Both the position numbers and the translations under genes were made by a program. The notes beneath the pieces are model-generated. The model did not search any database. It was not told the origin of the DNA and saw nothing but the letters and a program-made list of their open reading frames with translations. Positions 5,906 to 45,461 of a stretch of DNA of 64,000 nt are shown here, one piece after another. Within the stretch, counting starts at the first letter, position 1, and every line of letters starts with the position of its first letter. The DNA is taken from IMG/VR virus record IMGVR_UViG_3300017528_000567, positions 186,001 through 250,000 of that record. One strand, 5' to 3'.

Positions 5906-7309
5906 TCAATCCGTGCCCTTCAAATTAGCCACGGGATAGAGCCGGCTCCGGACCGTCGCGATCCTCTCCGCCTCCAGCACCGCAAGGACTTCATCAAGGT
6001 CCTTGTAGACGTGGCCGCACTCGTCCAGCGGCGTGTGCCGATGGTTGCCGATGATGCCCTCGACCATCGTACCGCCGAAGGAGCGCTGCACATTGGCCAT
6101 CTCGTCATCGATGTACTTCTGCTTGTGCTCCAGCTTCCGCTTTGCCTCACCCCGCGCAAGCAGCCGCCCAGACCCATGGTTCACAGAGCAAGCCGACTTG
6201 TGAGCCTCGGAACCGGGGAAAAGGATTGCCGCGCCCTCGTACATCGAGCCAGGAATCAAACATGGGTGTCCCGTCGCCTCCCAAACCGTGCCCATCAGGT
6301 CCGGGTGCCCCGCGGGGAACGCACGGGTCGAGCCCTTGCGATGAACAAAGCCCTTTCTATGCGTCCCGTCCGGCAACACGAGTGTCTCCTGTTGCACCAG
6401 GTTGTGCGAGATCTCGAAATAGACCTCAAGATCCGCGTTGAAGACCTCCTGCGTTGCTTCTCTCACGCCTTCGACGATCAAGTGCCGATTGGCTACCGCA
6501 AAGTTTGCCGCCGAGTTGTGATGCGCCCAGTACTCCTGTCCGAGCGGCTCGTCCATGCGTAGCCAGGATTCTTCGCGGCGGTTCTTTGCCAACCCGCGCA
6601 GCTCCGCACCTGCATAGAAGAAGTGGTTAGCCGTCTGCCACCCGTAACCGCGTGACCCGCAATGCACCATCACCCAAACTTCGCCGGTGTCCCGGTCACA
6701 CTGCATCTCGATGAAATGGTTGCCGCCGCCGACCGAGCCCAGCTGGTCCGAGACCTTGTCGTAGGCCTTCTCGATCTTGTGAAGGTCGAGCGTGTCCGGG
6801 ATTGGGATAAATCTCCGCTCACACAGAGCCTCATCAACCCCGAGCGCCTTCGCCCCATAACGCAGGATCTCATCCGCCTTGTTCTGCGAAAAACGCTTCA
6901 TCAGCGCGGGGCGATTATGTCCCACCCCCGTCGCGACTCGCTTCTCAACTTCATCGATCCACTCGCGCCGCTTGTGCTTGCTCTTGACGGATCCAGCCGA
7001 AAGGTGCGCCTTCATGTACAGAACCCCACAAGAGATGTCGTAGCCAGACCCGCCCTGGATGACGGTATCCTCCGTCACAATCACTGACCCCACGGGCACA
7101 CCGTAGCCAACATGGCAATCGGGAAGCAGGTACGCTCCAATCACACCTTCATAAGACGCCCCATTGGCGATCTGTTGCCACACACCCTCTTCTGACGCCG
7201 CGTAGAGCTCATCAGACAGGAAAGCATGCGCCTCCGTTCGCATGGTGCCGACTCTAGGAAGGACATAATGCGCATCACCAACTTTGTAGGCCTGGTACTT
7301 GAAAGACAT
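5906..7309 (-). CDS. rtcB: RNA-splicing/repair ligase RtcB
   Basis: PDCHVGYGVPVG, GYDISCG, GGGNHFIE, HCGSRG, HRKG, PGSM, HGSGR, DE..YK motifs; start set at MSFKY. Confidence 0.95.
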   Translation of the reverse strand: MSFKYQAYKVGDAHYVLPRVGTMRTEAHAFLSDELYAASEEGVWQQIANGASYEGVIGAYLLPDCHVGYGVPVGSVIVTEDTVIQGGSGYDISCGVLYMKAHLSAGSVKSKHKRREWIDEVEKRVATGVGHNRPALMKRFSQNKADEILRYGAKALGVDEALCERRFIPIPDTLDLHKIEKAYDKVSDQLGSVGGGNHFIEMQCDRDTGEVWVMVHCGSRGYGWQTANHFFYAGAELRGLAKNRREESWLRMDEPLGQEYWAHHNSAANFAVANRHLIVEGVREATQEVFNADLEVYFEISHNLVQQETLVLPDGTHRKGFVHRKGSTRAFPAGHPDLMGTVWEATGHPCLIPGSMYEGAAILFPGSEAHKSACSVNHGSGRLLARGEAKRKLEHKQKYIDDEMANVQRSFGGTMVEGIIGNHRHTPLDECGHVYKDLDEVLAVLEAERIATVRSRLYPVANLKGTD

Positions 7310-7320
7310 GACCCGACTCC

Positions 7321-7355
7321 AAAAGAAAAGGGGCGATGACTCGCGCCACCGCCCC
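7321..7355 (-). terminator. Intrinsic terminator-like hairpin
   Basis: GGGGCGGTGGCGCGAGTCATCGCCCC followed by TTTTCTTTT. Confidence 0.6.
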
Positions 7356-7378
7356 AGCATACTACAGTTTAGGAAAGG

Positions 7379-8959
7379 CTACCAACGCTTTGACTTTTGA
7401 CTGATCTTCCGCTTCTTAGGCTTTTCGGCAGGCAGCTTGTTATCTGCAACCGCGTCCAGTGGCTGGACAACCCATGGCATGGCTCCTGTGGTCAAGGTGC
7501 CAGCCCACGCCGCTGCATCATTCGACCCGCCTGCAATCTGAAAGTCCGCAAGAGCATCGCTGATGCTGAGATGGCCGGTCGGCAAACCTGTATCAGCGAC
7601 ATGGACATCGGGACCTGCGAACGTGGCAGAGACCGTTGCCTGCGATGAGTTCGTCAAGTTGACGCCCAGCGACTGCAGGTCCTGAGCGGCAGACGTCTCA
7701 TAGGTGCCGCTATACCCCCGAGTGCCGCCCCGTGTGACGCTAGCCCGATATGCCTGACTGCCAATATAGCTGTCTCGCGAGCGCAGCTGATCACCGATGT
7801 TCGTAGCCACGTTCCCGAGTCCAACGAGACCACGCGTCGTCACGTCCGTGGAAATAGTATTCATGACGCTCTGCGCACTGATGAAGTCGCCGCGCTTAGC
7901 GTGATCCTCAGCCTCAAGCTGTGCCCGGACCAGTTGAGCCAAGCCTACAACCTGGTCGAGCTCCGGGGTCGGGGTCTCCTGGTGCTCGCCGGCCTTGACG
8001 AACTGCACCTTCGCATTCGTTCCGAGGCTCTTGTGCTCGCGCCGGAGGTTGGCGTCCAAGACGTCGTAGCCGGCCTGGATATTGAACACGTTGACCTCGC
8101 GCGGGAGGGCGGACTTCTGTGCCTGCAACTTCACTGCGAGCACGAAATTCCGCGTCTCACCGGCCAGGATGTCAGACACCTTGAGCTTGACTTGGCCCGT
8201 CTCCTCCTCGTCGGCATCCACGTCCGTGATGACTTGGGTGACCTCATGGCCAGCGAGTGGGCCGATGGCAACCGTCAAATTTGTCGCGTACGTGCTCAGT
8301 AAGCCGCCGAGCTCCTTGCCGAACGCCGTGAGCGCATCGTCCGGATTCTCGACGAATGAATAGTTGCCGTTGCCCGCCTTGGACAGATCCGAAAGAAAGT
8401 CCTGAACCGCATCCTTGCCGTAACCAAAGGCACTGACCGACGCGATCCCGATATTGGGCTTCACCAGGGCAAGGAGCTCCGGCGGGGTCTTGGCCGGACC
8501 TGTGTTGGCCGCCCCATCCGTGAACAAGATGACGCGGGTGATCACCTCACTCGGCAAATCCATGTTGTTCGCGACACGGAAGCCTTCCAGCAAGGCATCG
8601 GCGATGTTCGTGGCGCCACTGAGCGTGAGCCCCTGCACCTTGCGTTTGAGGTCTTCCTTGGCCTCCGGCGTGCACTTCACAGGCTTTGACAACGTCTGCG
8701 CCGAATACGAAAACGCGATCAACCCGCAGTAGTCATTCGCGGAGAGATGATCGATGAGCTTGATCAAAGAGCGCTTCGCATACAGAAGCTTTGCGCCTTC
8801 CATCGAAGGGGATACGTCGATTAGTGGAACGATGCAGAGCGACGGGCGCTTCTCTTCGTTCGTGGTTGCCTCGGGGGCCGAGACGGTGACCACCAAATGG
8901 GCGGCCGTCTCTTGGTCAAAACGGACCTTACCGTATGTGAGTCTAGCTTCTACTTTCAT
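7379..8959 (-). CDS. von Willebrand factor A domain protein
   Basis: MIDAS DVSPSM, GATNI, ILFTDG motifs. Confidence 0.9.
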   Translation of the reverse strand: MKVEARLTYGKVRFDQETAAHLVVTVSAPEATTNEEKRPSLCIVPLIDVSPSMEGAKLLYAKRSLIKLIDHLSANDYCGLIAFSYSAQTLSKPVKCTPEAKEDLKRKVQGLTLSGATNIADALLEGFRVANNMDLPSEVITRVILFTDGAANTGPAKTPPELLALVKPNIGIASVSAFGYGKDAVQDFLSDLSKAGNGNYSFVENPDDALTAFGKELGGLLSTYATNLTVAIGPLAGHEVTQVITDVDADEEETGQVKLKVSDILAGETRNFVLAVKLQAQKSALPREVNVFNIQAGYDVLDANLRREHKSLGTNAKVQFVKAGEHQETPTPELDQVVGLAQLVRAQLEAEDHAKRGDFISAQSVMNTISTDVTTRGLVGLGNVATNIGDQLRSRDSYIGSQAYRASVTRGGTRGYSGTYETSAAQDLQSLGVNLTNSSQATVSATFAGPDVHVADTGLPTGHLSISDALADFQIAGGSNDAAAWAGTLTTGAMPWVVQPLDAVADNKLPAEKPKKRKISQKSKRW

Positions 8960-9164
8960 GGCCTATGCCTCTCGTTGCCGTCTGGCTATGCACTCGAGCG
9001 ACGCGGGACTGGACGGCCCCCAAAATCGGCGCGAGCGAACAGCTGGTTTTCAGAACGTCCTCTGGCAAACCCAAACCCCAGGGGGCGCGGTCAACCAGTA
9101 CGAAAAGCCCAAAACCCAAAGGCGCGGCCTCACGTGCAGATCTCTACACCAACTCCAACAAGAG

Positions 9165-9205
9165 AAACGCAAAAGGGGCGCCGGGGCTACTAACCCCGAC
9201 GCCCA
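9165..9205 (-). terminator. Intrinsic terminator-like hairpin
   Basis: GGGCGTCGGGGTTAGTAGCCCCGGCGCCC then CTTTTGCGTTT, right after the stop of 9212..10015. Confidence 0.6.
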
Positions 9206-9211
9206 CAAGTG

Positions 9212-10957: not shown

Positions 10958-13327
10958 TTAGATCCGGCACTCAATCTCGCGCATCTCAACCTTGCCATCA
11001 ATCTTGGTCCCAGGAACCGGCTCGAACGTGAGAGTTTGGTCATCCAAGGTAGCGAACTCCTTGAACCAGATTTGACCTACGACCAAAACGAAGGTGGTCT
11101 GGGCAATCTTGAAGATCAAGTCACGGACCTTAGCCTTAGCGGCGTCCGCCTGAATGTCCAGCCACGCCCGAACGGTATTATTTCTGCCATTGGCCTTGAC
11201 GAGAAGCTCATCGACCTCCCTGATAGTTGGCTCCATCAAAGCCGTCGGCCCGTTGATCTTGCCCTTCGCGATCGCCGCCTGTGCTTCCTTCAGGCTTGGT
11301 AGCTTAGAGTAGCCCTTGAGCGAGACCTTGAGCTCCTTACCCATATAGAAGTCAGTGCTCTCCGCCTGGACACTCTTCGGAGCAAACCCACCGTCGGTGA
11401 TGCCTTGCTCTTTGAGCCATTGCGCCGCTTCTTCACCGTACTGCTCCTTGATGCCCTCGGAGCGCTCCTTAGGGGCCAGTTCTTTGACGTACCCGTTGTA
11501 TACTTTCTGCTCTGCTTGCGCGGCGAGCAGCTGGTACTGGAGCCCGAAGAAGTCCTTCGCGCTCACGTCCCTGACCATCTTGCGATTGATTACCGGCAGC
11601 TCGCGCAGATTCAGAGTGCCAACCGCCCCGCCCTCATACTCCCAGTTGTCAGACTCGAAAACCTGATCGAGCTTAGCCCCGAGCTTCTCGCGCAAAGCCG
11701 CATAGCTCTCCTCGGTCAGCTTGACCGTCAACCGGTCGATATTGATTAGCCCATCCTTGATCACCGTGTAGTTGCGAAAGACCTGCGTCTTAAACTCAGC
11801 GGGCACCGCGGTGGGCGTCGATGACAGGCTCGCCGGCAACCGATCACTCAAATTGACCGTTCCGGGCTTGCGAATGAGAAACGAAACGTTCGGGCGATCT
11901 TCATTGAAGGTCAATGATGACACCGGATAGCCCGTGGGCGCGGCGTCCTCCTTGAACTTCAAGGCAACCGGCTTGCTCGACGTGATCTCGGTGATGCGAG
12001 CGGTGATTGCAGCAATGCGCGAAGCCTTCTTGGTCAGGCCCATCTCCTCGGTGAGCGTGCGAATCTCTTCCTGCTCCGCGTCAGTGAGCTGGTCACTACT
12101 GTCGACGCGACCGCGGCCAATGCGGCTGTACCGGAAGCGATTGTCGTTAAGCAGTACACGATTGCCGTCATCATTGGAGAGGAGCTGCAGCAGATCCAAA
12201 ACAGTGAAGGCATCATCCGCGGGCACCCGATTGGGGTCATACCCCTTGCTGAACGCCCCCTCACCGAACGCCGCTTTCTTGGCGTGTTCCTGGAACTCCG
12301 AGTACCGCTGCTTGCCGAAGCAATTCGCAAACTCCTCAACGAGCGAGACATCACCGAGCACCTTGAGCAGCGGGTACACGATGTTGGGCTTCATCCTCAC
12401 GGCGTAGAGCGAGACGGCGGCAAAGGCTGCGCAGATGTTGTCTGCGAGCTGCGGCGTCGGCTGCGCGGCTTCATAGGCAACGCTGTCAGCAAACGCCATC
12501 GAGCTCGGGACGCCGACCTGTGCCGGGGAGACGAACCAGAAGCCCGAGAGGTTCTCGGGCACTCGAACCTTGCCGCCCTCGACCGAGTAGGTGACCAAGT
12601 CGCCGTCCTGCAGAGCAAACACAAAGCCCTGGATCGGATCGCCGTCAATCGCCACCTCGACCCGGGGCGCGCCCACCGGCCGCTTCTGCATCGTCGCCTC
12701 GAAGGTCGGCTCGTAACGATTGAAGTCCTCTGCAAAGATATGAGATCCGCCCGCCTTCTCAGCCATAGCGGCCAAGAGATTGCGGTCCGCGTAGTAACCG
12801 TACTCCACAACCGTGGTGCACTGGAAACCGTTGGCGGCTTCTTCCATCGCCTTGAGAATGCTGGCCCGGGTGCCCTGGTTGTCACAGCCATCAGATAGGA
12901 AAAGAAGGCTACTGACACTACCTGGGCGAGCCTTCGCGACGCGCTCCACAACCCTACCCGCTTCTTGAATCGGCTCCGTGAATCCCGTCAGACCGCATGG
13001 CTTGAGCCAGCGATCGATCGCGTGCTCCACGGCCTTGAGGTCCGTGAGCGTTGCTACCGGCTCCGCCTCCAAGAGGGTCCCGAATTCACCCCGACCGCTG
13101 AACCAGATCAGCGAAATCGTGTCCTGCTCCTTCAGCAGCTTGGGAAGCTTTCGCTTCAGCTGCTCGCGGATGCGCGGAAGGTCCCAGTACATCGAGCCCG
13201 AGCAATCGATGACCGCAAAGTGGTTTGTCGGGAGCTCGACTGCGACTACCGGTGCTTGGTCAGCTGCGTGCCTCTGATGAACTAAAAATAGGTCCTTGGA
13301 TATTTGGTACGAAACGGTGTTCGGCAT
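10958..13327 (-). CDS. Large vWA-domain protein (phage type)
   Basis: DCSGSM MIDAS and FLSDG in the N-terminal third; GGTGTA-N9-ATG. Confidence 0.85.
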   Translation of the reverse strand: MPNTVSYQISKDLFLVHQRHAADQAPVVAVELPTNHFAVIDCSGSMYWDLPRIREQLKRKLPKLLKEQDTISLIWFSGRGEFGTLLEAEPVATLTDLKAVEHAIDRWLKPCGLTGFTEPIQEAGRVVERVAKARPGSVSSLLFLSDGCDNQGTRASILKAMEEAANGFQCTTVVEYGYYADRNLLAAMAEKAGGSHIFAEDFNRYEPTFEATMQKRPVGAPRVEVAIDGDPIQGFVFALQDGDLVTYSVEGGKVRVPENLSGFWFVSPAQVGVPSSMAFADSVAYEAAQPTPQLADNICAAFAAVSLYAVRMKPNIVYPLLKVLGDVSLVEEFANCFGKQRYSEFQEHAKKAAFGEGAFSKGYDPNRVPADDAFTVLDLLQLLSNDDGNRVLLNDNRFRYSRIGRGRVDSSDQLTDAEQEEIRTLTEEMGLTKKASRIAAITARITEITSSKPVALKFKEDAAPTGYPVSSLTFNEDRPNVSFLIRKPGTVNLSDRLPASLSSTPTAVPAEFKTQVFRNYTVIKDGLINIDRLTVKLTEESYAALREKLGAKLDQVFESDNWEYEGGAVGTLNLRELPVINRKMVRDVSAKDFFGLQYQLLAAQAEQKVYNGYVKELAPKERSEGIKEQYGEEAAQWLKEQGITDGGFAPKSVQAESTDFYMGKELKVSLKGYSKLPSLKEAQAAIAKGKINGPTALMEPTIREVDELLVKANGRNNTVRAWLDIQADAAKAKVRDLIFKIAQTTFVLVVGQIWFKEFATLDDQTLTFEPVPGTKIDGKVEMREIECRI

Positions 13328-13663: not shown

Positions 13664-14200
13664 TCAGCCGGATGCGAACTCAAGGTGCGGAATCCCCTGG
13701 AGATAGAACACCCAAGCCTCCGGGACCTTCGCGAGCGGGACCGCCGGCATCTTCAGCGGCAGCCACTTCGGCCGCTCCGGGACCTTGAGTAACTGCATCC
13801 CGGCCTGCTTTGGCGTGCGACCACCCTTCCAAGAGTTGCACGGAATACAGCTGGAAACCACATTGGTCCAGACGGTCTTGCCGCCCTGCGCTCTCGGGAT
13901 CACATGGTCGTAGTTCAGCTGACGGCGCGGAAAGCGGTGCCCGCAGTACTGGCACTGATAGTTGTCACGTGACAGCACGTTCTCGCGCGAGAACTTCACA
14001 CCCTTCTTGTTGTGCGGGACCTCTGTCTTGATTCGCGCCACAGACGGGATGTAGAAGGTAACACTCGGAGACGACACGGTTGCGTCGTGATTCACGAGCA
14101 CCTCGATCTCACCCTCGACTAGCTTGCAGATAGCCGTCCGCCAATCGACGATTCTGTGAGGTTGCATCCAAGACGTTAGTAGAAGTGTGTGATGTTCCAT
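13664..14200 (-). CDS. HNH endonuclease (McrA-like)
   Basis: RDNYQCQYCG, DHVIPRAQGG, CIPCNSWKG. Confidence 0.92.
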   Translation of the reverse strand: MEHHTLLLTSWMQPHRIVDWRTAICKLVEGEIEVLVNHDATVSSPSVTFYIPSVARIKTEVPHNKKGVKFSRENVLSRDNYQCQYCGHRFPRRQLNYDHVIPRAQGGKTVWTNVVSSCIPCNSWKGGRTPKQAGMQLLKVPERPKWLPLKMPAVPLAKVPEAWVFYLQGIPHLEFASG

Positions 14201-14204
14201 GCAA

Positions 14205-14231
14205 TTACCGCCTGCGTCTTAACCGCTTCAT
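14205..14231 (-). CDS. Arg-rich micro-ORF MKRLRRRR
   Basis: GAGAGG RBS, ATG AAG CGG TTA AGA CGC AGG CGG TAA, ending 4 nt before the HNH start. Confidence 0.45.
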   Translation of the reverse strand: MKRLRRRR

Positions 14232-14263
14232 CTGGCGCCTCTCTGTTGTGTCAATGAACGTGT

Positions 14264-14354
14264 CGGTACTCGGGGCAGGAGTTCGAACCTGCATGCGTTT
14301 CCGCAGCCGGGCCAACTAGACCCTGCCGTGTCTACCAAATTCCACCACCCGAGC
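14264..14354 (-). tRNA. Atypical tRNA-Leu-like gene (irregular anticodon arm, 8-nt T loop)
   Basis: GCTCGGG/CCCGAGT acceptor, Leu-type D arm GTGGAATTTGGTAGACAC, GCAGG-TTCGAACT-CCTGC. Confidence 0.6.
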
Positions 14355-14381
14355 GTAGTTTGCCTAACATAAGATGCCAGG

Positions 14382-36930: not shown

Positions 36931-36947
36931 AATGGACCGAGTCCCTG

Positions 36948-37016
36948 ACTGCCGCGCCGTCGTTCGACCCAGGTACTCGGCGGAGCTGGGCAACTCTTTG
37001 GCGACGTGGCAGCACC
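36948..37016 (-). ncRNA. Hairpin RNA with Y-RNA-like bulged helix
   Basis: GTTG-CCCAG pairs with CTGGG-T-CGAAC; begins 9 nt after GGTGTA. Confidence 0.45.
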
Positions 37017-37044
37017 TCAGCGAGCTACACCACTAGGGTGCCGC

Positions 37045-37117
37045 AGTGCGGGTAGAGGGAATTGAACCCTCACCTCATGCTTGGCAAGCATGCGTTCGAC
37101 CGTTGAACTATACCCGC
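37045..37117 (-). tRNA. tRNA-Gly(GCC)
   Basis: Loop TTGCCAA. Confidence 0.9.
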
Positions 37118-37134
37118 GAAACTACTGCCACTAC

Positions 37135-38220
37135 TCAAAAGGAGTAGTCGAATAACGCTGATGACGCCGTCTTCTCCTCACCGGCCTCACTCAACACCTT
37201 GTTGAGATGCGCTGCCAGATACTCCGCAATCTTGGCGGGCGTGCCTGACTTGGCGCGGAGCAATGTCTTGGCGCGGTCACCGCCGAAGAAGTTCGTGAAC
37301 TGCTCGACCTTGACCTTGACCACCGCCTGGTCGCGATCCTTCCGATCAAACCCAGCAATGGTGAACTGCAGGCGGCCCTTATCTTTGATGAAGAGTTTGC
37401 AGTACAGCGCCCCACTTCCACCGAGCTGGTGCTCCGACCGGTCGATCGTAAACTCTGCGTCACCCTTGACCTTGACCTTGACCTTGACCTTCGATTCGAG
37501 CCAATCGGCGAACTTGTTGAAGCTCATCGCGCCGGGAGTCTTCTTGACCTCTTCAGCCTTCGCCGCCGCGGCCTCCTCCTGCTCGACCTTCATCTTTGCT
37601 TTCATCTCTTCGGGATCGACAACCGTCGGAGCGACCTTGCCATCGATCAGGTCCTGCACAAGCGGCGCGGCCTTCAGCCCAACTTCCTTGCCGATCGCCG
37701 ACCAAGTTTCCAATTCCTTGCGCGCCTCGCCGAGCTCGTGCATCGACGCTGGCTTCGGCTCACCGTTGATGACCCAAGTCGCCCCCTTCAGTTGGGCTAC
37801 CAGGTGCTTGGTCTGCGCAAATACCAGCGCCTTGATCCCATCAAAGTCAGCCTTCGGAAACTCTTTCATGAACTCCGAGACGGCAGAGGCATTCGAGTAC
37901 CCGGTAAGACCAGCCCACTGAACGTGGTCTTGTGCATCCAGATACATACACCCTGCCACACCCGCATACGTACTGGCCTTGGGTTTGTTCCAGCTCAACG
38001 CGGCATCCTTCTCAGGCTCACCACCCGGATACCACGCCTTCGAAGTCTGCTCGACAAGGCGAAAGCCCTGCCTCGCCTTGAACTCTAGCCATACACGCTT
38101 GCGGCACCTGGCTTTGAAGCCACTAGGATAGTCGTCGATCACATAAGCGTTCTGAGGGCTATCGTGTCCGTACAGAGGTTTCTTGCTGCTGGCGGTGCGC
38201 ACTCGAAAGTCGTAGGTCAT
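37135..38220 (-). CDS. Hypothetical protein (MTYDFRVRTA N-terminus)
   Basis: CTTATG-N13-ATG. Confidence 0.75.
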   Translation of the reverse strand: MTYDFRVRTASSKKPLYGHDSPQNAYVIDDYPSGFKARCRKRVWLEFKARQGFRLVEQTSKAWYPGGEPEKDAALSWNKPKASTYAGVAGCMYLDAQDHVQWAGLTGYSNASAVSEFMKEFPKADFDGIKALVFAQTKHLVAQLKGATWVINGEPKPASMHELGEARKELETWSAIGKEVGLKAAPLVQDLIDGKVAPTVVDPEEMKAKMKVEQEEAAAAKAEEVKKTPGAMSFNKFADWLESKVKVKVKVKGDAEFTIDRSEHQLGGSGALYCKLFIKDKGRLQFTIAGFDRKDRDQAVVKVKVEQFTNFFGGDRAKTLLRAKSGTPAKIAEYLAAHLNKVLSEAGEEKTASSALFDYSF

Positions 38221-38492
38221 GTCTAGAACGTGACATAAGAAGCCTATGGCAGTTAGGGGGCAACGTCCCAATCTATGAAGATCTATTGCAGACTATTTGC
38301 CAGACTATTTTGCACCTACATCTCGAGTGAAAAGCGCTAGGTTTCCCCACCGCGTCCCCTAGCGGACGCCCATTCGCCAAGCCCCCGGCTCGGCTGGTGG
38401 TCATTGCGCTCTGTGCGCTGCTTCTGGCGCGGGCAGGGAGGCACCCTACGCGCCGTAATCCTCTGGTGAGCCCGCTCATAAGAAGGGCTCTC

Positions 38493-38660
38493 ATGACTCA
38501 TTTCGTTTGCTCTAGTTGCGGCGCCGGCGTCCATCACGATGAACACCCGGAAGGCCGGCCTGTCCTTGCCTGCGATTGCGACCCCAACGAAGCCAAGCCG
38601 ATCGAGGTTCCCTACTATTCTGAAGCCGAAGAGTGGGATGACTGGATTCGAAGGCGTTGA
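38493..38660 (+). CDS. Small zinc-binding protein
   Basis: MTHFVCSSCG...CDC. Confidence 0.5.
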   Translation: MTHFVCSSCGAGVHHDEHPEGRPVLACDCDPNEAKPIEVPYYSEAEEWDDWIRRR

Positions 38661-38673
38661 CTCCCGGCACAGC

Positions 38674-38748
38674 TGGCGCACACGACCCGACTCGAACGGG
38701 CATTATCCTGGGTGAAAACCAAGGGTCCTACCATTAGACGACGTGTGC
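38674..38748 (-). tRNA. tRNA-Glu(TTC)
   Basis: Loop TTTTCAC, CCA. Confidence 0.88.
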
Positions 38749-38750
38749 AG

Positions 38751-38870
38751 AGGTCCGTGACGGCGGCATAGAACGCAAGCCTCGCAGCCGGGCGCAGACC
38801 TCGTTGATCAAGCGAGCGCCGCCACTACGACTTAGAAGGTCGCCGCGTATTCTTAAAGCCTGTGTCACGA
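38751..38870 (-). ncRNA. tRNA-like RNA with Arg(TCT)-type anticodon arm and expanded T arm
   Basis: TCGTGAC/GTCACGG-ACC, GCGAC-CTTCTAA-GTCGT, GGCGGC...GCCGCC enclosing about 50 nt. Confidence 0.5.
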
Positions 38871-38872
38871 AC

Positions 38873-38949
38873 CGGCACCCCCACGGGGCGACGATCCCCG
38901 TTCACGTCACTGAGAATGACGTATCCTAACCAACGTAGACGATGGGGGC
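38873..38949 (-). tRNA. tRNA-Glu(CTC)
   Basis: Loop TTCTCAG. Confidence 0.85.
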
Positions 38950-39239
38950 ATGTAACCTGTAACCATACATCATGCAGGCGCTTGAACATTCACCGGCGCC
39001 CGATTGTATTCGCAGGGTCACGCAAACCGAACAGGAGTCGCCATGAAGCCACGCATGACCGCCCTCACTTGCACCTTGCTTGTACGAACCTTCGCCTCTT
39101 TAGAAGCCGGAGCCAAAGAGGTAACCGAGGCACTTGGCTGGGTGAACTATTTTCTCGCCACTTGGATCAGCCTCGACCATTCGAGCTCGGTCGGACGTAA
39201 ACGTGCGGTCAAACTGCCGCCAGCTTCGAACTAGGCGTG

Positions 39240-39317
39240 TGGTGGGTTGTCCAGGAGTCGAACCCGGTTCTACCGCTCTTCAGGCGGTCGCTGAATAACC
39301 GTACTAGCTCACAACCC
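39240..39317 (-). tRNA. tRNA-Phe(GAA)
   Basis: Loop CTGAAGA, CCA. Confidence 0.88.
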
Positions 39318-39319
39318 AT

Positions 39320-39395
39320 AGAGCCCGTGATGGGGATCGAACCCACCGAAGTCCGCGGTACGAGTGCGGTGCCTCACCATTGAGGCGACACGGGC
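39320..39395 (-). tRNA. tRNA-Thr(CGT)
   Basis: Loop CTCGTAC. Confidence 0.85.
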
Positions 39396-39416
39396 AGAAT
39401 CATAAGGCGATCACGC

Positions 39417-40031
39417 TCAAGTCACGGGGCTCTCTATCGGAGCGATTGCGAAGCGGATGCGGCGGACCTGGGCCGTGTTTGCCGAGCCCACTCTGCGCAG
39501 CTGCAGCACAAGCGAAGGTGCGTCGAGTGCATTAGCCGCCAAGATAACAGACCCCGAAAAAGAAGTGTAGAAAGTCAGGTTGTTGGAGCTTTCAGCCCGC
39601 TCCACCCCCGCCCACAAGATTCTAGCCGAGACCCCTGATGTTGAATCCGCGGTCACGACGGCTAGCTCACTGTAAAAGGAGACCAGATAGTTTCCGCCTG
39701 CCAAAAGCCCTGACTGCATCGTAGCCTTGGTAACGTAAGTCGTGCCCGGCTCCGTTTGAACGCCCTCCGAAAACAACGTCTGAGCTCCACGCACGTACCC
39801 CACACCAGTGTGAGTATTACAGACATTGTCGATGGCGGTCAGATCTGCGGCGCTCGGGGTAACGTTGAACTGAAGGACGAGGGTCCCAGTCGCCACAGTG
39901 GAAAAAGTGCTCACACACTTGGCACTGGTAATGGCCGCACCGATCTGCGCCTCAAGGACCTCGATGTTTGGCCAAGAGGTAGTGAGGGCCGAGAAGCCCC
40001 CGGGCACATTCTTAGTGATTTGGTAAGCCAT
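39417..40031 (-). CDS. Hypothetical beta-rich, possibly virion protein
   Basis: Thr/Ser/Ala-rich 204 aa, AAGGA RBS. Confidence 0.65.
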   Translation of the reverse strand: MAYQITKNVPGGFSALTTSWPNIEVLEAQIGAAITSAKCVSTFSTVATGTLVLQFNVTPSAADLTAIDNVCNTHTGVGYVRGAQTLFSEGVQTEPGTTYVTKATMQSGLLAGGNYLVSFYSELAVVTADSTSGVSARILWAGVERAESSNNLTFYTSFSGSVILAANALDAPSLVLQLRRVGSANTAQVRRIRFAIAPIESPVT

Positions 40032-40173
40032 CGGTCGTCCTTTGGACCTTGGTACACCGAGAACTCCCGCCGTCCCATGCCGGCCGCGGCGGAAACCAAA
40101 ATATGCGGTTGCCTACTGATTTGTTCGGGCCGCACCCGGCACTCTCGGGCCTATCTCTCACGTAGGTGGTTCT

Positions 40174-40247
40174 CGGCACGCCGCCCGGGACTCGAACCCG
40201 GATGAAGAGTTTTGGAGGCTCCCATCTTGCCATTAGATGAACGACGT
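40174..40247 (-). tRNA. tRNA-Trp(CCA)
   Basis: Loop CTCCAAA. Confidence 0.87.
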
Positions 40248-40252
40248 AAGAC

Positions 40253-40345
40253 CCACGGGCACCACTGGAACGTCTCGAGGACGACTTACCCAGAGTAACC
40301 GCAACGTTCTTAGAACGACTTACGCGGCTTTGGTGCTGGACGTGG
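40253..40345 (-). ncRNA. Twin-hairpin small RNA
   Basis: Closing stems CCACG/CGTGG and GCACCA/TGGTGC; two GTAAGTCGT..ACGTT hairpins. Confidence 0.55.
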
Positions 40346-40346
40346 T

Positions 40347-40421
40347 TGGTCGAGCTGGCGGGAATTGAACCCGCTGCCTCCTGTTCCCGAAACAGGCGTC
40401 ATACCGATTGACTACAGCTCG
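40347..40421 (-). tRNA. tRNA-Pro(CGG)
   Basis: Loop TTCGGGA, CCA. Confidence 0.9.
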
Positions 40422-40422
40422 T

Positions 40423-40499
40423 TGGTCTAGATGGAGGGATTCGAACCCACGGCCTCACCGCCCCAAACGGTGCGCACTACCAGGCTGTGCTACATCTAG
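40423..40499 (-). tRNA. tRNA-Pro(TGG)
   Basis: Loop TTTGGGG, CCA. Confidence 0.9.
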
Positions 40500-40518
40500 A
40501 TACTCGTCACAACATTCT

Positions 40519-40594
40519 CGGTCGGCCGTAGAGGAGTTGAACCTCTTTCTCCACGTTATCAGCGTGGCAAACTAAACCCTAGTTATAACGGCCG
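40519..40594 (-). tRNA. tRNA-Ile(GAT)
   Basis: Loop CTGATAA. Confidence 0.85.
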
Positions 40595-40654
40595 TGGCTA
40601 AAGCCGCCTCTCGCGAGACGGCCTCGTTGCTCCTTCCGCACATGGCGGATGAGC

Positions 40655-40846
40655 TCAGTTCGGGAGATCTTCCTCTGAGTTGACCAACGCCACCACGAGC
40701 TCGGTACCATTCGGCCCGATGCCTTCGGCGTTGAGGTAGACCTCATCAAGCGACGCCGAGTACCTCTGCCTCTTGATACCGATGGTCACGGGCCGGTCAG
40801 GGTCCGTGCATTGACTCAAGATGCGGATGAGCTCGCCGACGGTCAT
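40655..40846 (-). CDS. Small phage protein (MTVGELIRIL)
   Basis: Typical phage small-ORF start motif. Confidence 0.6.
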   Translation of the reverse strand: MTVGELIRILSQCTDPDRPVTIGIKRQRYSASLDEVYLNAEGIGPNGTELVVALVNSEEDLPN

Positions 40847-40857
40847 ACGAAAAAAAT

Positions 40858-40991
40858 AGAGAGCGCTCGAGGAATCAGGCAGGATAACCTCTTTCGAGGG
40901 CGACTGGGATCGAACCAGCAACATTCTGTGTACAAGACAGATGCTCTACCAAATGAGCTACGCGTGTATGCCTGATGAAGTGAACGCTCTC
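40858..40991 (-). ncRNA. Y-like RNA: conserved terminal stem enclosing a tRNA-Thr(TGT)-like domain with a broken acceptor
   Basis: GAGAGCG-TTCACTTC-ATCAGGCA...TGCCTGAT-TCCTCGAG-CGCTCTC, followed by a U tract. Confidence 0.7.
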
Positions 40992-41067
40992 GGATGCGAA
41001 CCCCTGGAGTCGAACCAGGTTTCTCCGGCTTATGAGGCCGGCGGATTGCCGTCTTCCCCGGCCGCCA
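40992..41067 (-). tRNA. tRNA-Met(CAT), irregular acceptor
   Basis: CCGGC-CTCATAA-GCCGG, canonical T arm. Confidence 0.72.
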
Positions 41068-41094
41068 TGTAGAGAACTTACACCAAAAGAAAAT

Positions 41095-41226
41095 GAGAGC
41101 AGCGCTCGAGAGATCAAGCAGAGAGTTCGCAAAGCGGGGATTGAACCCGCCTAGTCTTTTTTGGATGAAAGGTGCCCCACCTTGGGGCGATTTGCTTGTG
41201 TGCTCGATCGAAGTGAATGCTGCTCG
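41095..41226 (-). ncRNA. Y-like RNA: same terminal stem enclosing a degenerate tRNA domain
   Basis: GAGCAGC-ATTCACTTC-GATCGAGCA...TGCTTGATC-TCTCGAGC-GCTGCTC; D arm GCCCC/GGGGC; T arm GCGGG-TTCAATC-CCCGC; U tract. Confidence 0.7.
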
Positions 41227-41299
41227 GCTCCTAGGGAGGGTAACGATCCCCCAACCACGCCGTTAACAGCGGCGCGCTCTACCGTTGAGCTACCTAGGA
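41225..41299 (-). tRNA. tRNA-Asn(GTT)
   Basis: Loop CTGTTAA. Confidence 0.87.
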
Positions 41300-41302
41300 A
41301 AA

Positions 41303-41380
41303 TGGCTGGGACGGAGGGCCTCGAACCCCCAAATCACTTGGTTAACAGCCAAGCGGCTTACCTGCTTTGCCTACATCCCA
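41303..41380 (-). tRNA. tRNA-Asn(GTT), second copy
   Basis: Loop CTGTTAA, CCA. Confidence 0.87.
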
Positions 41381-41408
41381 ATGAACCGGGGACACCCCGG
41401 CAGAAACT

Positions 41409-41624
41409 TTAGAAGCAGCTCTCAACGCCCATCCCGATCGGAGCGGGGCGATGATACTGACAGCGGACTTTCTCGAGCTGCAGCTTGAGCTTACCGTCCG
41501 CGCCGACCACGTGTTGAAAATAGTGCCCGTGAGCCACGCCATCTTGGATGGCATCTGTGGAGGGCTGCAGGACTGCGATCCCACAAATGCCACACACCCC
41601 TGGTCTGATGTTCTTGTTCGGCAT
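41409..41624 (-). CDS. Small Cys/His-containing protein
   Basis: CGIC...CQYH; GGAG RBS. Confidence 0.55.
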   Translation of the reverse strand: MPNKNIRPGVCGICGIAVLQPSTDAIQDGVAHGHYFQHVVGADGKLKLQLEKVRCQYHRPAPIGMGVESCF

Positions 41625-41639
41625 TGGTCTCCCCGATGG

Positions 41640-42008
41640 TCACCAATCGTAACAAGGGCGTTTGAAGTCCTCCAACGAGTGCCGGCTCGGAACCGTCTGC
41701 CCTGACCGCGCTCCAAGCATGTCCTTGCGAACCACTGCCGTCCCGTCAGCTCGAACGTCTTCTCGATACCACGCGCCAAAGTTTACAGCCTTCGGGACCC
41801 TCTGGCCCTCTACCACGAACAAGCACAAGCGAGGTGGTCCCCCTAATGTGCCGGCCATGTCCGTAAATTCGAGGATTGCTTTACCCGCTAGCAGCCGGTT
41901 AATCACCTTCAAGGTGGCTATACACGGCTTGTCCGGACCCAGGATCCTCATGAGATAGTTGAACCTCTTCGTTTCAAAATCTATCGCTTTTGGCATTGAC
42001 TGGCTCAA
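41640..42008 (-). CDS. Hypothetical protein
   Basis: 122 aa ORF. Confidence 0.55.
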   Translation of the reverse strand: MSQSMPKAIDFETKRFNYLMRILGPDKPCIATLKVINRLLAGKAILEFTDMAGTLGGPPRLCLFVVEGQRVPKAVNFGAWYREDVRADGTAVVRKDMLGARSGQTVPSRHSLEDFKRPCYDW

Positions 42009-42024
42009 TGAACCGGGCCTCTCC

Positions 42025-42103
42025 CCGGTAGGTCACGCCTGATTCGGTCGACTGGCTTTGTGCCAAGTGGCAGTGGCGTTCCTTCGTGCGGCGCTACACC
42101 GCG
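42025..42103 (-). repeat. About 80-nt promoter/leader repeat, copy 1 (copy 2 at 43146..43224)
   Basis: CCGCGGTGTAG.GCCGCAC.AAGGAACGC.ACTGCCACT...GTCGACCGAATCAGGCGTGACCTACCGGGGA. Confidence 0.85.
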
Positions 42104-42107
42104 GCGC

Positions 42108-42491
42108 CTACCTGCGAGCGCCGATAATCTCAAGAACCATTTCGGCAACCATGTCGACAGTGATGAGGCCGATCTTGGCCGCGTGCGACCGCTGAACCTT
42201 CCGCTTGTACATGGAATCGAAGTCCAGATGGACCGTCGCCTCGAAGTTCGCCGACGCCAACGTGAGGGACACCGAGCCACTCAAGTCGAAGTCGCTGATG
42301 TCCGTGCCCTCGACGATGAGGAAACTCATCGAGATGCCATCGCGGACCCTACATGTACAGTACTTCTGCTTGGCATTCACAATCCTGCCAACTTCCCCGA
42401 GGAACTCCGCTTCAGCGCGCTTCAGGTAGTCGTTGAAGGACTTGCTAGTGTCGGTGCGGGGATCGGAGGACTCGGTTGCTGACTTGGACAT
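42108..42491 (-). CDS. Hypothetical protein
   Basis: MSKSATES... portion of ORF 42108..42590. Confidence 0.55.
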   Translation of the reverse strand: MSKSATESSDPRTDTSKSFNDYLKRAEAEFLGEVGRIVNAKQKYCTCRVRDGISMSFLIVEGTDISDFDLSGSVSLTLASANFEATVHLDFDSMYKRKVQRSHAAKIGLITVDMVAEMVLEIIGARR

Positions 42492-42652
42492 GTTCTTTAC
42501 CTTCCGGTCTAGGAACAATCCACAGGGGCCATTCTTCAAGCTCAAGATGCGTTTTCCAGAACGCACCCTTGCACACACTGACCCCTCCATCGAGCTACCC
42601 CGGCGCGGGACCCTGAGTGGACCCCATAAATCTCTGATTTGAGGCCTTATGC

Positions 42653-43066
42653 ATGCGTACCATAGGTCTCGCTCTACTATTCGCCCTCATCGCGCCCTTC
42701 TCAGCTAACGCACAGGAAAACACCCCTGCTGCGACGGGAGGATCGACCGAGGTAACATCAACCCCAAGCCACCATTCCGACACAGAGCACAAATTCGGGT
42801 TCGGGCTTCGCTTGAAAGCTGCTGTTGGTGTCCACGCTCGCGACATAGTCGACGGGCGGAGACTTCTTGACTCCGGAGACGTCGGAATAATGATTGAGCC
42901 GCTCCACTTTTACCGCGCTAACCTGAACGCGTTCGCAAGCTTTCGCTCCGTTGGAATAGGTCTCGGCCACGATGTCACTCCGCACTTCGGCCTAGCAATC
43001 CTGGCCAACACGCCCTGGGAACAATGGCGACCTACGCCATTCCTAAGTGCGTACTTCGTATTTTGA
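42653..43066 (+). CDS. Secreted/outer-membrane beta-strand protein
   Basis: Signal peptide ending ANA-Q; amphipathic strands; C-terminal YFVF. Confidence 0.6.
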   Translation: MRTIGLALLFALIAPFSANAQENTPAATGGSTEVTSTPSHHSDTEHKFGFGLRLKAAVGVHARDIVDGRRLLDSGDVGIMIEPLHFYRANLNAFASFRSVGIGLGHDVTPHFGLAILANTPWEQWRPTPFLSAYFVF

Positions 43067-43089
43067 GAGGGGCGTACTCTGACGAGGGC

Positions 43090-43143
43090 TGGCGTCCCCG
43101 GAAGGATTTGAACCTTCACGCCAGCCTTCGTGGCGCCTTTCCA
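43090..43143 (-). pseudogene. Degenerate 3' copy of tRNA-Arg(ACG)
   Basis: GGAAAGGCGC..ACG.AGGCTG..TGAAGGTTC.A.TCCTTCCGGGGACGCCA matches 44134..44207. Confidence 0.7.
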
Positions 43144-43145
43144 TC

Positions 43146-43224
43146 CCCGGTAGGTCACGCCTGATTCGGTCGACCGGCCGATGGCCAGTGGCAGTTGCGT
43201 TCCTTTGTGCGGCTCTACACCGCG
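43146..43224 (-). repeat. About 80-nt promoter/leader repeat, copy 2
   Basis: Near-identical to 42025..42103. Confidence 0.85.
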
Positions 43225-43347
43225 GCGACGAAAGGTTGTGCCGCCAAGAGCTTGCGCGCGGACACATTATGGCGGTAACTTGAGAGCTTGCGCGCAGGGC
43301 CAGTTCGGCGGTAACGTTCAGGGCATTGCGCTTGGAGGAGCGTAACC

Positions 43348-44121
43348 ATGCCAGAAAACAGCCTGCAGGATTTAAGGGACGACTGGGCCGTCGGCGACGA
43401 TGTCCTGGTTGAATATCCAGGTTATGGCGGCGTAACGAGCTCGGTGAAAGCTGGCCGCATAGTGGACAAGGAGTCGGCGTTCGCGACAGTCCGGGTCGAA
43501 AATGGCGGGAATCAGAAGATCCCCTACAAACGCCTGAGACCAGTCGCCAGGCCAACCCGCCGTGTCCCGAACCCACAAGCGGCGCAACAATCGTTGCCCT
43601 TGCCGCAGTCGGTGCCGGGGCTGAGAGCAGTCCCACCAGCGCTTGCAGGTCTCGCTGAGGCACTCACGCCCGCATCAGCCGTGGTGACAGCCGAGCCCAC
43701 TCTCGCTCCCAGTCCCGCGCCTGTAGAAGAACAGAAACTCGTCAGGCTCGCCCCACGGTCCGCAGCACCGCGAGTCATACCGGCGCAGCCAGAGCTCGAA
43801 GCGACGCCAGAGCTCGAAGCGACGCCAGTGCCCGTGCCGACACCGGTAGCGACACCGAGGAAGCGCAAAACTGACAACATCGCTGCCTGGCTTGAGAACG
43901 GCGAAACAATCCTTGATCAGCTAGCCGCCAAGGAAAAAGATCTCAAAGCAGAGACCAAGGAGCTGGAGGAACTCCGGAGAGAGGTCGAAGAGGAAGCCGC
44001 CGCGAAGCTGGCCGCCCTAGTGAAAATCCAGGCGGACATCGAGTCTTTCCGGAAGCTCAGGAAGTTCATCGCTACAGTTCGCCCGAACATCCCCCTCGTT
44101 CAGGCCGAGCAGCACGCCTAG
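43348..44121 (+). CDS. Protein with SH3/Tudor-like N-terminus, Pro/Ala linker and C-terminal coiled coil
   Basis: GGAGGAG RBS; WAVGDDVLVEY; PELEAT repeat. Confidence 0.7.
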   Translation: MPENSLQDLRDDWAVGDDVLVEYPGYGGVTSSVKAGRIVDKESAFATVRVENGGNQKIPYKRLRPVARPTRRVPNPQAAQQSLPLPQSVPGLRAVPPALAGLAEALTPASAVVTAEPTLAPSPAPVEEQKLVRLAPRSAAPRVIPAQPELEATPELEATPVPVPTPVATPRKRKTDNIAAWLENGETILDQLAAKEKDLKAETKELEELRREVEEEAAAKLAALVKIQADIESFRKLRKFIATVRPNIPLVQAEQHA

Positions 44122-44133
44122 GATTCAGTGCCT

Positions 44134-44207
44134 TGGCGTCCCCGGAAGGACTCGAACCTTCATAGCAGCCTCCGTAGGACTGCGCCTTTCCTTTAGACGA
44201 CGGGGAC
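44134..44207 (-). tRNA. tRNA-Arg(ACG)
   Basis: Loop CTACGGA, CCA. Confidence 0.88.
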
Positions 44208-44261
44208 AACGGGGATAAGGGTGCCCACATCTGGCCCTTATCCCCACTGAGTGTTCAGAGA

Positions 44262-44336
44262 CGGTGGAGTCACGGGGACACGATCCCCGATTTCCTGGGT
44301 GCAAACCAGGTGTCTTCCCAATTGGACGATGACCCC
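44262..44336 (-). tRNA. tRNA-Ala(TGC)
   Basis: G3-U70, loop TTTGCAC. Confidence 0.88.
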
Positions 44337-44347
44337 GAACATTGATC

Positions 44348-44421
44348 TGGTGGAGAGCACGGGAATCGAACCCGCCAACCGCTGAATGCGAAACAGCGCC
44401 GGCCCCTTGCCTGTCACCCCC
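44348..44421 (-). tRNA. tRNA-Ala(CGC)
   Basis: G3-U70, anticodon CGC, CCA; irregular stems. Confidence 0.75.
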
Positions 44422-44520
44422 CGTCGACGCCGCTGCGAGTACGGTCGCGGCTACCGGCTAGATTCTCGACACTCGCTGTGATCTAACAGACCCTCTGTCA
44501 GATTGGCTCTGCAGCCGTCT

Positions 44521-44595
44521 AGGCGCCCCCGACAGGAGTCGAACCTGCCTCAGCTGATCGACAATCAGCCCGCCTCACCCGATGCGTACGAGGGC
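44521..44595 (-). tRNA. tRNA-Asp(GTC)
   Basis: Loop TTGTCGA. Confidence 0.85.
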
Positions 44596-44837
44596 ACAAC
44601 ACGTTGCGATAGCTCCGCAATGGAGCTACATGTCTTTCGCGGGGGCCTCGGGCCTTAGGAGCCCAAGACCCCCGCTAAGACGGATGACACACGTCACACT
44701 CATCGCCCAGGGATCCGCCCGGTACGACCCCAATGACGTGGTCATCTCGAATTCCTATATTCAGTTGTCAACGAACGAAGACGCCACAATCGCTTATCCA
44801 GGCTGATCCCGGTATTCGGGGCCTTTCGCGTCTTCAC

Positions 44838-44911
44838 AGTGCCGCACCAGGGAGTCGAACCCTGTGGAGCCATCTTAAGAGGATGGTGCTCGACCGTTGA
44901 GCGTGCGCGGC
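44838..44911 (-). tRNA. tRNA-Lys(CTT)
   Basis: Loop CTCTTAA. Confidence 0.88.
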
Positions 44912-44913
44912 GT

Positions 44914-44988
44914 TGTAGGGTCGGAGGGGATCGAACCCTCGATCGTCCGATTAAAAGTCGGCTGCTTTGTCCACTTAGCTACGACCCC
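44914..44988 (-). tRNA. tRNA-Lys(TTT)
   Basis: Loop CTTTTAA. Confidence 0.9.
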
Positions 44989-45046
44989 AAAATAGGCGGC
45001 GTCGCAGCGTTCGTTTGAGTCGTCTCATGGATACCTATTTTCTCTC

Positions 45047-45130
45047 TAGTGGTGGGGGGCGGAATTTGCACCGCCACAGGATTAACGGCTGATTTACAGT
45101 CAGTTGGGCTCACTCGTGCCCAGCCCCACC
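45047..45130 (-). tRNA. tRNA-Tyr(GTA)
   Basis: Loop CTGTAAA, long variable arm. Confidence 0.85.
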
Positions 45131-45202
45131 AGAATCATCTGGGTAGCGGCTGAGCGTCGATAGCGTTCGTGTAGCGGTTCGTGTCGCATGGTCTGAGCTC
45201 TA

Positions 45203-45240
45203 GAAACGAAAAGAGCCGCCTGGTTTCCCGGGCGGCTCTC
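45203..45240 (-). terminator. Attenuator terminator upstream of the tRNA array
   Basis: GAGAGCCGCC-CGGGAAACCA-GGCGGCTCTT then TTCGTTTCT. Confidence 0.8.
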
Positions 45241-45266
45241 GATTCAATCCTACTTTCGTGGATTGG

Positions 45267-45461
45267 TTAGTCGAGTGCCGCCCTATGATCTGCCTCGGGT
45301 CGCGGATTGCGGGTGCTAAACACCGAGGCTTGGTGGGACGTAATGTTCTTACCGCCGAGATAGCTCGCCGACAGACCTTCAGAGCCCAAGCTCAGGACGC
45401 ACCACATCCCCGCGGTTTTCACCGACTGGGATAAGGGTCTTGATGTGAGCTGAGTCGTCAT
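45267..45461 (-). CDS. 64-aa attenuator leader peptide
   Basis: Last codons (GGGCGGCACTCGA) complementary to the terminator 5' arm; upstream GGTGTA at 45524-45529. Confidence 0.7.
   Translation of the reverse strand: MTTQLTSRPLSQSVKTAGMWCVLSLGSEGLSASYLGGKNITSHQASVFSTRNPRPEADHRAALD

Follow-up and report, generated by a model that had tools for sequence, protein, structure and literature searches.

Gene content of the locus

The DNA analyzed here is a stretch of 64,000 nucleotides (the window) that corresponds to bases 186001-250000 of the 255,478-bp IMG/VR record IMGVR_UViG_3300017528_000567 (contig G000). Positions 5906 to 45461 of the window hold a large tRNA island, a gene for an RtcB RNA ligase at its distal edge, and, embedded among the tRNAs, a block of five genes. 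In order, these encode a Ro60-like protein (17511-19382), a 319-amino-acid (aa) partner protein, u319 (16539-17498), a JAB/JAMM metallopeptidase (16141-16521), a ubiquitin-like protein (Ubl; 15866-16129, within a 92-codon open reading frame, or ORF, at 15866-16144), and a minimal, 196-aa E1-like adenylyltransferase of the ThiF family (15127-15717). Coordinates are those of the window unless a related locus is named. All of these features lie on the minus strand, as does every long ORF of the 64-kb window. The co-orientation that an initial annotation of this DNA had described for the region therefore holds throughout but is not special to the island.

A five-gene block conserved among large phages

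A search with one of the window's proteins led to related virus contigs, the longest of which has 497 kb. When all window proteins were compared by tblastn with 26 related loci, the same gene order was found in the 22 loci whose fetched stretch spans all five genes, with identities of 38 to 86%; the ThiF gene runs off the stretch in L014 and L022, and three shorter loci end earlier. The partner gene follows the Ro60-like gene, either directly or after inserted DNA, in every sufficiently long relative. All five near-complete relatives compared (376 to 497 kb) contain the block, and all five contain tRNA genes (29 to 49 each). Many co-oriented tRNAs lie on one or both sides of the block in about 15 of the 24 loci that contain all or most of it, while 6 of these loci have between one and four and 3 have none within 10 kb; a tRNA is often found immediately upstream of the Ro60-like gene. 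At 90% identity, the Ro60-like family forms more than 1,400 clusters, and at 50% identity, it forms 202. The block, which measures about 4.3 kb, is abundant in metagenomes from soil and is kept over a range of G+C content (GC) from 32% to 59%.

Distant homologs of the Ro60-like protein were found on phage contigs with a GC of 32 to 45%. Homologs of the partner were recovered by hhalign at 95 to 97% in L032, L034, and L036 and weakly in L033, and ThiF proteins were recovered at 98 to 99% in L033, L034, and L036, in each of which a weakly JAB-like protein is encoded just upstream of ThiF. Because these distant, low-GC phages keep the association, the block is older than the clade to which the window belongs. 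L036 also has 12 tRNAs upstream and a gene for a PTH2 peptidyl-tRNA hydrolase (6015-6455) about 3.5 kb upstream of its Ro60-like gene. In L034, an FtsH-like protease (AAA plus Peptidase_M41; 6391-8607) is encoded directly after the E1 gene.

The Ro60-like protein

The first protein of the block has 623 aa, counted from the ATG of the database copy P0001; the mechanical ORF (646 codons) extends to 19451. It is laid out as an N-terminal beta domain (residues about 29 to 92), helical repeats (about 98 to 415), and a C-terminal vWA domain in which the residues of the MIDAS (metal ion-dependent adhesion site), D429, S431, S433, T492, and D519, are invariant. Sequence methods recognize only the vWA domain. 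With the AlphaFold2 model of the protein (mean predicted local distance difference test score, pLDDT, of 77.8; predicted template modeling score of 0.45), the best 10 Foldseek matches in the PDB were all Ro60/TROVE proteins, including the Ro60 of Thermus phage phiLo, and the Ro60 matches had E values of 5e-8 to 4e-6 over 490 to 580 columns. Clusters named TROVE, Ro, and DUF7788 in the AlphaFold DB match residues of about 98 to 590, and in a comparison of language-model features for residues 1 to 420, TROVE and DUF2828 clusters ranked first, with a score (0.79) that we treat as a lead only. The N-terminal beta domain is without a Ro60 counterpart in the structural alignments. Our reading of these models is that the protein has a very divergent Ro60-like architecture, as distinct from a demonstrated membership in the Ro60 family.

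The ubiquitin-like components and the partner protein

The JAB protein, assigned by Pfam, has a complete and invariant JAMM motif (E6, H53xH55, and S64xxD67). The Ubl, which probably starts at Met6 of the 92-codon ORF, ends in an invariant RPKTPFG motif that is followed by a tail of 0 to 4 variable residues, or of 11 to 60 residues in three relatives (L010, 15767-16201; L012, 7103-7423; L013, 16254-16562), two of these long tails being Cys rich. An invariant RPKTPFG with a variable tail is the pattern expected of a Ubl with a peptidase-exposed terminal Gly, and under a trimming model, the JAB protein would have to remove the long tails. A beta-grasp fold for the Ubl is supported indirectly, through the ESM Atlas cluster nearest to it, whose model resembles Prok_Ub and Ub-RnfH/ThiS beta-grasp proteins (template modeling [TM] scores of 0.53 to 0.58).

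The E1-like protein (Pfam ThiF, E value of 1.1e-17) carries the invariant motifs GxGALGS, D100-C101-x-D103-N104, and T153-C154-E155. Its best family matches are the ThiF, MoeB, and UbaA adenylyltransferases, and the PADLOC E1-E2 models match the E1 part of the protein. Confirmed at this locus are thus a ThiF-type E1, a JAB peptidase, and a small protein whose C-terminal RPKTPFG is invariant.

The partner protein was delineated from its model (pLDDT of 83) and from synteny. An N-terminal beta-rich domain, weakly OB-like, is followed by a long charged coiled coil (residues 158 to 203) and a C-terminal alpha/beta domain in which C259, C261, and C274 are invariant. No E2 (UBC fold) or RING protein was recognized by sequence in the block; Cys274 of the partner is a candidate E2-like site. 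The partner homologs of L033 (11695-12573), L034 (4330-5268), and L036 (12994-13854) each finish in a tail that is strongly acidic and has a Trp as its last residue or close to it, which recalls the protein-recruiting tips of SSB-type proteins; the window copy is without such a tail.

The tRNA island

The island (14265-45130) consists of 45 plausible tRNA genes and two aberrant tRNA-like elements, with ORFs interspersed, as judged from ARAGORN, Rfam, and the relatives. With default settings, ARAGORN reported 38 tRNAs between 14265 and 44988, each of them on the minus strand, whereas the remaining 224 kb of the contig gave none. Rfam at the gathering score gave 33 tRNAs, including two that were missed by ARAGORN (40900-40963 and a tRNA-Met at 40995-41065), and Infernal run on the whole contig added a tRNA at 44840-44911 (45.2 bits) that was read by hand as Lys(CTT). 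A low-threshold ARAGORN search contributed six more intergenic minus-strand candidates: three Ser tRNAs (21000-21272), one Met (34145-34220), one Gly (41125-41197), and one Tyr (45049-45130). Relatives lend support to some of these calls, in that L010 shares the succession Ser(cga)-Ser(tga)-Ser(gct) and L007, L020, L023, L024, and L026 share the Tyr(gta)-Lys(ttt)-Lys(ctt) order with which the island starts. Together, the 45 tRNAs cover 20 amino acids with 42 anticodons, the coverage of Met and Tyr depending on lower-confidence calls, and the earlier count of about 44 tRNAs for all 20 amino acids on one strand is upheld. The clustering of 38 to 45 tRNAs within 31 kb on a single strand is far beyond chance. 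A tRNA-Ile with the anticodon TAT, which is uncommon in bacteria, is encoded at 23250-23326 besides Ile(GAT). Only two tRNAs have a CAT anticodon, and both are low scoring.

The description of many tRNA mimics in the same region was overstated, as there are two clearly aberrant elements and a few weak candidates. The first aberrant element (14265-14354), identified with ARAGORN and by folding, has Leu-like acceptor, D, and T arms and an "anticodon" arm that is folded into an 8-bp stem with an interruption and a 5-nucleotide (nt) loop; with so odd an arm, it would be unable to decode. The second (40900-40963) resembles tRNA-Thr(TGT), has an acceptor stem that is broken, and matches Rfam with 50.3 bits over model positions 5 to 66 only. 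The 423-nt gap at 14201-14623 folds no better than its shuffles (z score of -0.38).

Just upstream of tRNA-Tyr lie a 63-codon ORF (45270-45461) and then a terminator-like hairpin (45205-45243), the pair of features (45205-45461) that the initial annotation had called an attenuator. The hairpin is strong (-27.1 kcal/mol, z score of -3.8); a simple terminator scan did not report it. The numbers of promoter-like and terminator-like sites between 32000 and 48000 do not exceed those in shuffled sequence, so that the region is not set apart there as a unit.

RtcB and the variable genes between the tRNAs

The product of the gene at 5906-7360 is an RtcB 3'-phosphate/2',3'-cyclic-phosphate RNA ligase (Pfam E value of 1.7e-85), with a match that is full length (positions 1 to 426 of 426, 288 bits). 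In an alignment to TTHA1785, the blocks PDxHxGYG, DIxCGV, GNHF, HxGSRG, HN, and NHGSGR are present, the last of them aligning under the HGAGR block of solved RtcB structures; the conserved blocks of RtcB include those that bind metal and the one, corresponding to NHGSGR here, that contains the His nucleophile. RtcB is encoded in two of the five near-complete relatives. Where present, it is encoded near the island, and both in the window and in L030 it marks the island's distal edge. In L030, tRNAs, a gene like that of vWA526 (see below), Ser tRNAs, and RtcB are followed by homologs of chaperonin-family (Cpn60/TCP-1) and clamp-loader-like proteins. As these last genes are homologous to those of the window, the distal edges of the two loci match. 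In the window, the corresponding genes are a chaperonin-family (Cpn60/TCP-1) gene at 3426-5063, beyond RtcB, and two clamp-loader-like genes with DNA polymerase III delta-type domains at 513-2436; this set (513-5063) has the same order after RtcB in L030 and is a conserved backbone.

Adjoining RtcB is vWA526 (7379-8959), a 526-aa protein with an N-terminal vWA domain (Pfam) and a homolog, 47% identical, upstream of RtcB in L030; it is found in none of the five near-complete relatives. A second N-terminal vWA domain was recognized by Pfam in a 789-aa protein (10958-13327) that belongs to the variable cargo. The HNH endonuclease gene (13664-14200; Pfam) varies in position among the relatives and is probably a mobile homing-type gene. 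The SpoU/TrmH-class RNA 2'-O-methyltransferase (19775-20347; Pfam), weakly TrmJ-like, is strain-specific cargo and has no counterpart in the five near-complete relatives. Pfam thus substantiates the RtcB, SpoU, HNH, and vWA proteins named earlier, the vWA proteins being three when the Ro60-like protein is included. Two components that had been omitted are a pair of hybrid histidine kinases and some 25 ORFs of the region that have no family match. The kinases, identified from domain matches, are PAS-rich paralogs of 652 and 1253 aa (26082-28040 and 28199-31960) with 61% identity over the length of the shorter one. Their HisKA domain is found in none of the five near-complete relatives, the best cellular matches are to metagenome-assembled genomes (MAGs) of a "delta proteobacterium" (57% identity) and of Polyangiaceae (48%), and they are cargo unrelated to translation.

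Just upstream of the island are genes for an MT-A70-family methyltransferase (48497-49477) and an N6/N4 DNA methyltransferase (49884-51482), and a 1253-aa methyltransferase-helicase fusion is encoded at 56720-60481.

An uncultivated jumbo phage of soil

The IMG/VR record is labeled "provirus," with a CheckV completeness estimate of 54%. This label looks wrong, as GC stays between 55 and 61% across the window with no compositional break and relatives have direct terminal repeats. Three of the relatives, of 376 to 393 kb, have such repeats and are rated 100% complete; these repeats and sizes argue against a provirus or host island, as do the genes that flank the tRNA island. Among the products of these genes are a protein of the chaperonin family, clamp-loader-like proteins, and DNA methyltransferases, and the genes on the distal side recur beside RtcB in L030. 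The source is a virulent-type uncultivated soil jumbo phage. A 6-kb stretch had no megablast match in 50,697 records of cultured phages, and the closest RtcB of a cultured phage is at most 32% identical to that of the window. Between 58 and 89% of the words sampled from the central 6 kb were found again in metagenomes of soil and rhizosphere that come from at least four separate studies, which shows the element to be real and recurrent. Its host may belong to the Myxococcota. The ESM Atlas clusters of the Ubl are labeled mostly Myxococcota, and the nearest cellular relatives of the kinase are Polyangiaceae-like.

Comparison with known systems

Jumbo phages that combine many tRNAs with RtcB or Rnl1/2 ligases, and in a small subset with ROT/TROVE proteins, have been described by Iyer et al. 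(2021, Viruses 13:63, PMC7824862), who read such sets as RNA repair in phage-host conflict and cite Xanthomonas phage XacN1 for its high tRNA gene complement. The window resembles these phages in its large co-oriented tRNA set, its RtcB, its TROVE-like protein, and its origin from a phage of more than 200 kb. It differs in having a TROVE-like protein that has diverged beyond the reach of Pfam, bears an additional beta domain at the N terminus, and has a Ubl, an E1, and a JAB protein as fixed companions in a block; the published text uses none of the terms JAB, Ubl, E1-like, and ThiF, and it mentions ubiquitin twice, in other contexts (PMC7824862). The theme of tRNAs, RtcB, and TROVE is thus already published, and the new element is the conserved five-gene block.

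The bacterial rsr-yrlBA-rtcBA RNA-repair operon unites Ro60, tRNA-like Y RNAs, and RtcB (PMC4201824), and the Ro60 of Thermus phage phiLo binds Y-like (Yrl) RNAs (PMC12135203). The window shares with these systems a vWA domain with a MIDAS, possibly joined to a helical-repeat ring, an RtcB in the neighborhood, and tRNA-like RNAs nearby. Unlike them, however, it has no TROVE sequence signature and its YrlA match is at noise level, and in contrast to the arrangement in the operon, its RtcB lies at a distance of about 10 kb, and most relatives lack one.

Prokaryotic systems with E1, JAB, and Ubl components include PRTRC cassettes, Cap2/Cap3 of the cyclic oligonucleotide-based antiphage signaling system (CBASS), Bil and Bub operons, and vWA-MoxR "FtsH ternary" systems (PMC1779556, PMC7159879, PMC10097602, PMC11601596). 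The FtsH ternary conflict systems of bacteria link vWA proteins to Ubl conjugation, with different components (PMC7159879). The block has the same kinds of parts: the Cys of its ThiF-type E1 is conserved, its peptidase is of the JAMM type, its small beta-grasp-like protein has a C-terminal Gly that does not vary, and a vWA protein is linked to them. Unlike these systems, it is encoded by phages and conserved in a clade rather than placed in a bacterial defense island, its E1 is minimal (196 aa) and without a fused E2, no E2 or RING is recognizable, and its partners are a Ro60-like protein and a 319-aa coiled-coil protein. In the searchable literature, which did not cover Burroughs and Aravind (2016, NAR 44:8525), the linkage of Ro60-like, partner, JAB, Ubl, and E1 genes in phages appears not to have been described.

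A conserved core, variable cargo, and alternatives

The initial annotation had presented the region as one integrated program for countering host defenses. Co-occurrence bears out only a part of this: tRNAs and the five-gene block are found in all five near-complete relatives, whereas RtcB is found in two and SpoU, HisKA, and vWA526 in none. Because the block and the tRNAs are constant and the other genes vary, the region is better described as a conserved core with variable cargo than as a single fixed program. The first layer, which is clade-wide, is a near-complete co-oriented tRNA set with the embedded five-gene block; the second is strain-specific cargo between the tRNA clusters, consisting of RtcB, SpoU, HNH, the two further vWA proteins, the two kinases, and the approximately 25 ORFs. 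Taken together with a Ubl system that acts on a Ro60-like scaffold, this is the reading we favor and consider reasonably probable.

From the gene content, motifs, and synteny observed here, we infer a scheme in which every biochemical step, the RNA binding, and any role in counter-defense are put conditionally. The phage tRNAs would supplement the host pool for phage translation, and RtcB, where present, would reseal tRNAs cut by anticodon nucleases. JAB would trim the Ubl, exposing Gly89, and the E1 would adenylate it. The Ubl could then be passed via a cysteine (Cys154 of the E1 and perhaps Cys274 of the partner) to a target, which would likely be the Ro60-like ring and the partner or their clients. 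The ring may bind structured RNA, such as the phage's own tRNAs, so that Ubl tagging would be coupled to an RNA-binding scaffold. A more far-reaching claim is that the jumbo phages of a clade that is itself very large, and that lives in soil and sediment, possess a self-contained apparatus for Ubl tagging, made up of JAB, the Ubl, the minimal E1, and the partner as a new E2-like protein with a Cys, and built around a divergent Ro60-like RNA-binding ring, which would link Ubl conjugation to the surveillance of structured RNA or tRNA in a way that has no described cellular or viral counterpart. This we put forward tentatively, as possible but doubtful.

Several results weigh against the favored reading. 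The name "Ro60-like" holds at the level of the fold, through the 10 best Foldseek matches, but not by sequence: phmmer and a family profile retrieved no Ro60 from PDB sequences, Pfam TROVE (PF05731) was detected in none of the 26 family members at an E value of ≤1 and in none of 10 distant homologs at an E value of ≤0.01, and a profile of the 414 N-terminal positions, searched against 1.84 billion representatives, found 202 relatives only and no route to TROVE. The TM scores of the Foldseek matches to Ro60 are only 0.19 to 0.25, and the best 50 VIA-align matches of the model are all limited to the vWA domain. No conserved noncoding RNA partner was seen; with Rfam at an E value of ≤1, no Y-RNA family matched, except for YrlA below threshold (29.5 bits against a gathering score of 69), on two tRNA-Asn genes and at noise level. 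No tRNA lies within 10 kb of the block in L013, L014, L027, L033, and L034, and G003 has its main tRNA cluster at a distance of about 150 kb. As the block is not always beside tRNAs, its link to tRNA biology could be positional only. A prediction of the four-chain complex returned a formal verdict of "no answer" and was not used as evidence. None of the RNA runs searched for the phage DNA contains it, and metatranscriptome contigs from related samples gave only pieces of less than 140 nt with about 80 to 85% identity, below a usable level.

The chemistry of the Ubl, E1, and JAB proteins could also be that of a sulfur-carrier pathway of the ThiS, MoaD, TtuB, or CysO type, in which a thiocarboxylate serves tRNA thiolation or a thio-cofactor and no protein is tagged. 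The best matches of the E1 to ThiF, MoeB, and UbaA, the position of the block among tRNAs, and the failure to find an E2 by sequence are all consistent with such a pathway, and JAB-trimmed sulfur carriers are established in CysO/Mec+ and QbsE/QbsD. However, no rhodanese, cysteine desulfurase, or PP-loop thiolase was found among the ORFs scanned between 5906 and 25318, although host enzymes could substitute for the absent sulfurtransferase or thiolase. Moreover, the Ubl ends in FG, whereas sulfur carriers end, to our knowledge, in GG, and the strict linkage to the 623-aa vWA and 319-aa coiled-coil proteins would be left unexplained. We regard this pathway as unlikely. It is quite unlikely, in our estimation, that the block serves virion assembly, replication, or protein turnover instead of RNA, with the island being an insertion hot spot around an ancestral backbone cluster; the fold and feature searches with the large protein point to Ro60/TROVE, and the block adjoins tRNAs in most loci, including the distant L036 with its PTH2 gene.

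That the whole 40 kb is nonetheless one co-regulated answer to tRNA-targeting defenses, in which the tRNAs would replace the host pool, with the mimics as decoys, repair by RtcB and Ro60, and tagging by the Ubl, could be argued from the co-orientation of all the genes, the terminator-like hairpin at the upstream edge of the island, the position of RtcB next to tRNAs in the window and in L030, and the interpretation in the literature of tRNAs plus a ligase as a response to anticodon nucleases (PMC7824862). Against it, RtcB is present in only two of the five relatives and SpoU and vWA526 in none, no more than two clearly aberrant tRNA-like elements were found, the island carries unrelated cargo such as the histidine kinases, promoter-like and terminator-like sites in 32000-48000 are at shuffle level, and the co-orientation extends over the whole window and so is not specific. 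We consider a single program very unlikely and retain the conserved core with variable cargo, and the Ubl system on a Ro60-like scaffold, as the preferred reading.

Implications

Large tRNA sets and RtcB in phages have already been read as a means of independence from, or defense of, host translation, and the window adds little there. What is new lies in the block. As it is compact, abundant, and conserved over a wide range of GC, its proteins could be expressed and assayed without cultivation of the phage. If a Ubl system does work on a Ro60-like RNA-binding protein, the poorly understood vWA/MIDAS face of Ro60-type proteins would gain a testable partner, and phages would themselves be users of ubiquitin-like chemistry and not merely the targets of Bil-type and CBASS defenses.

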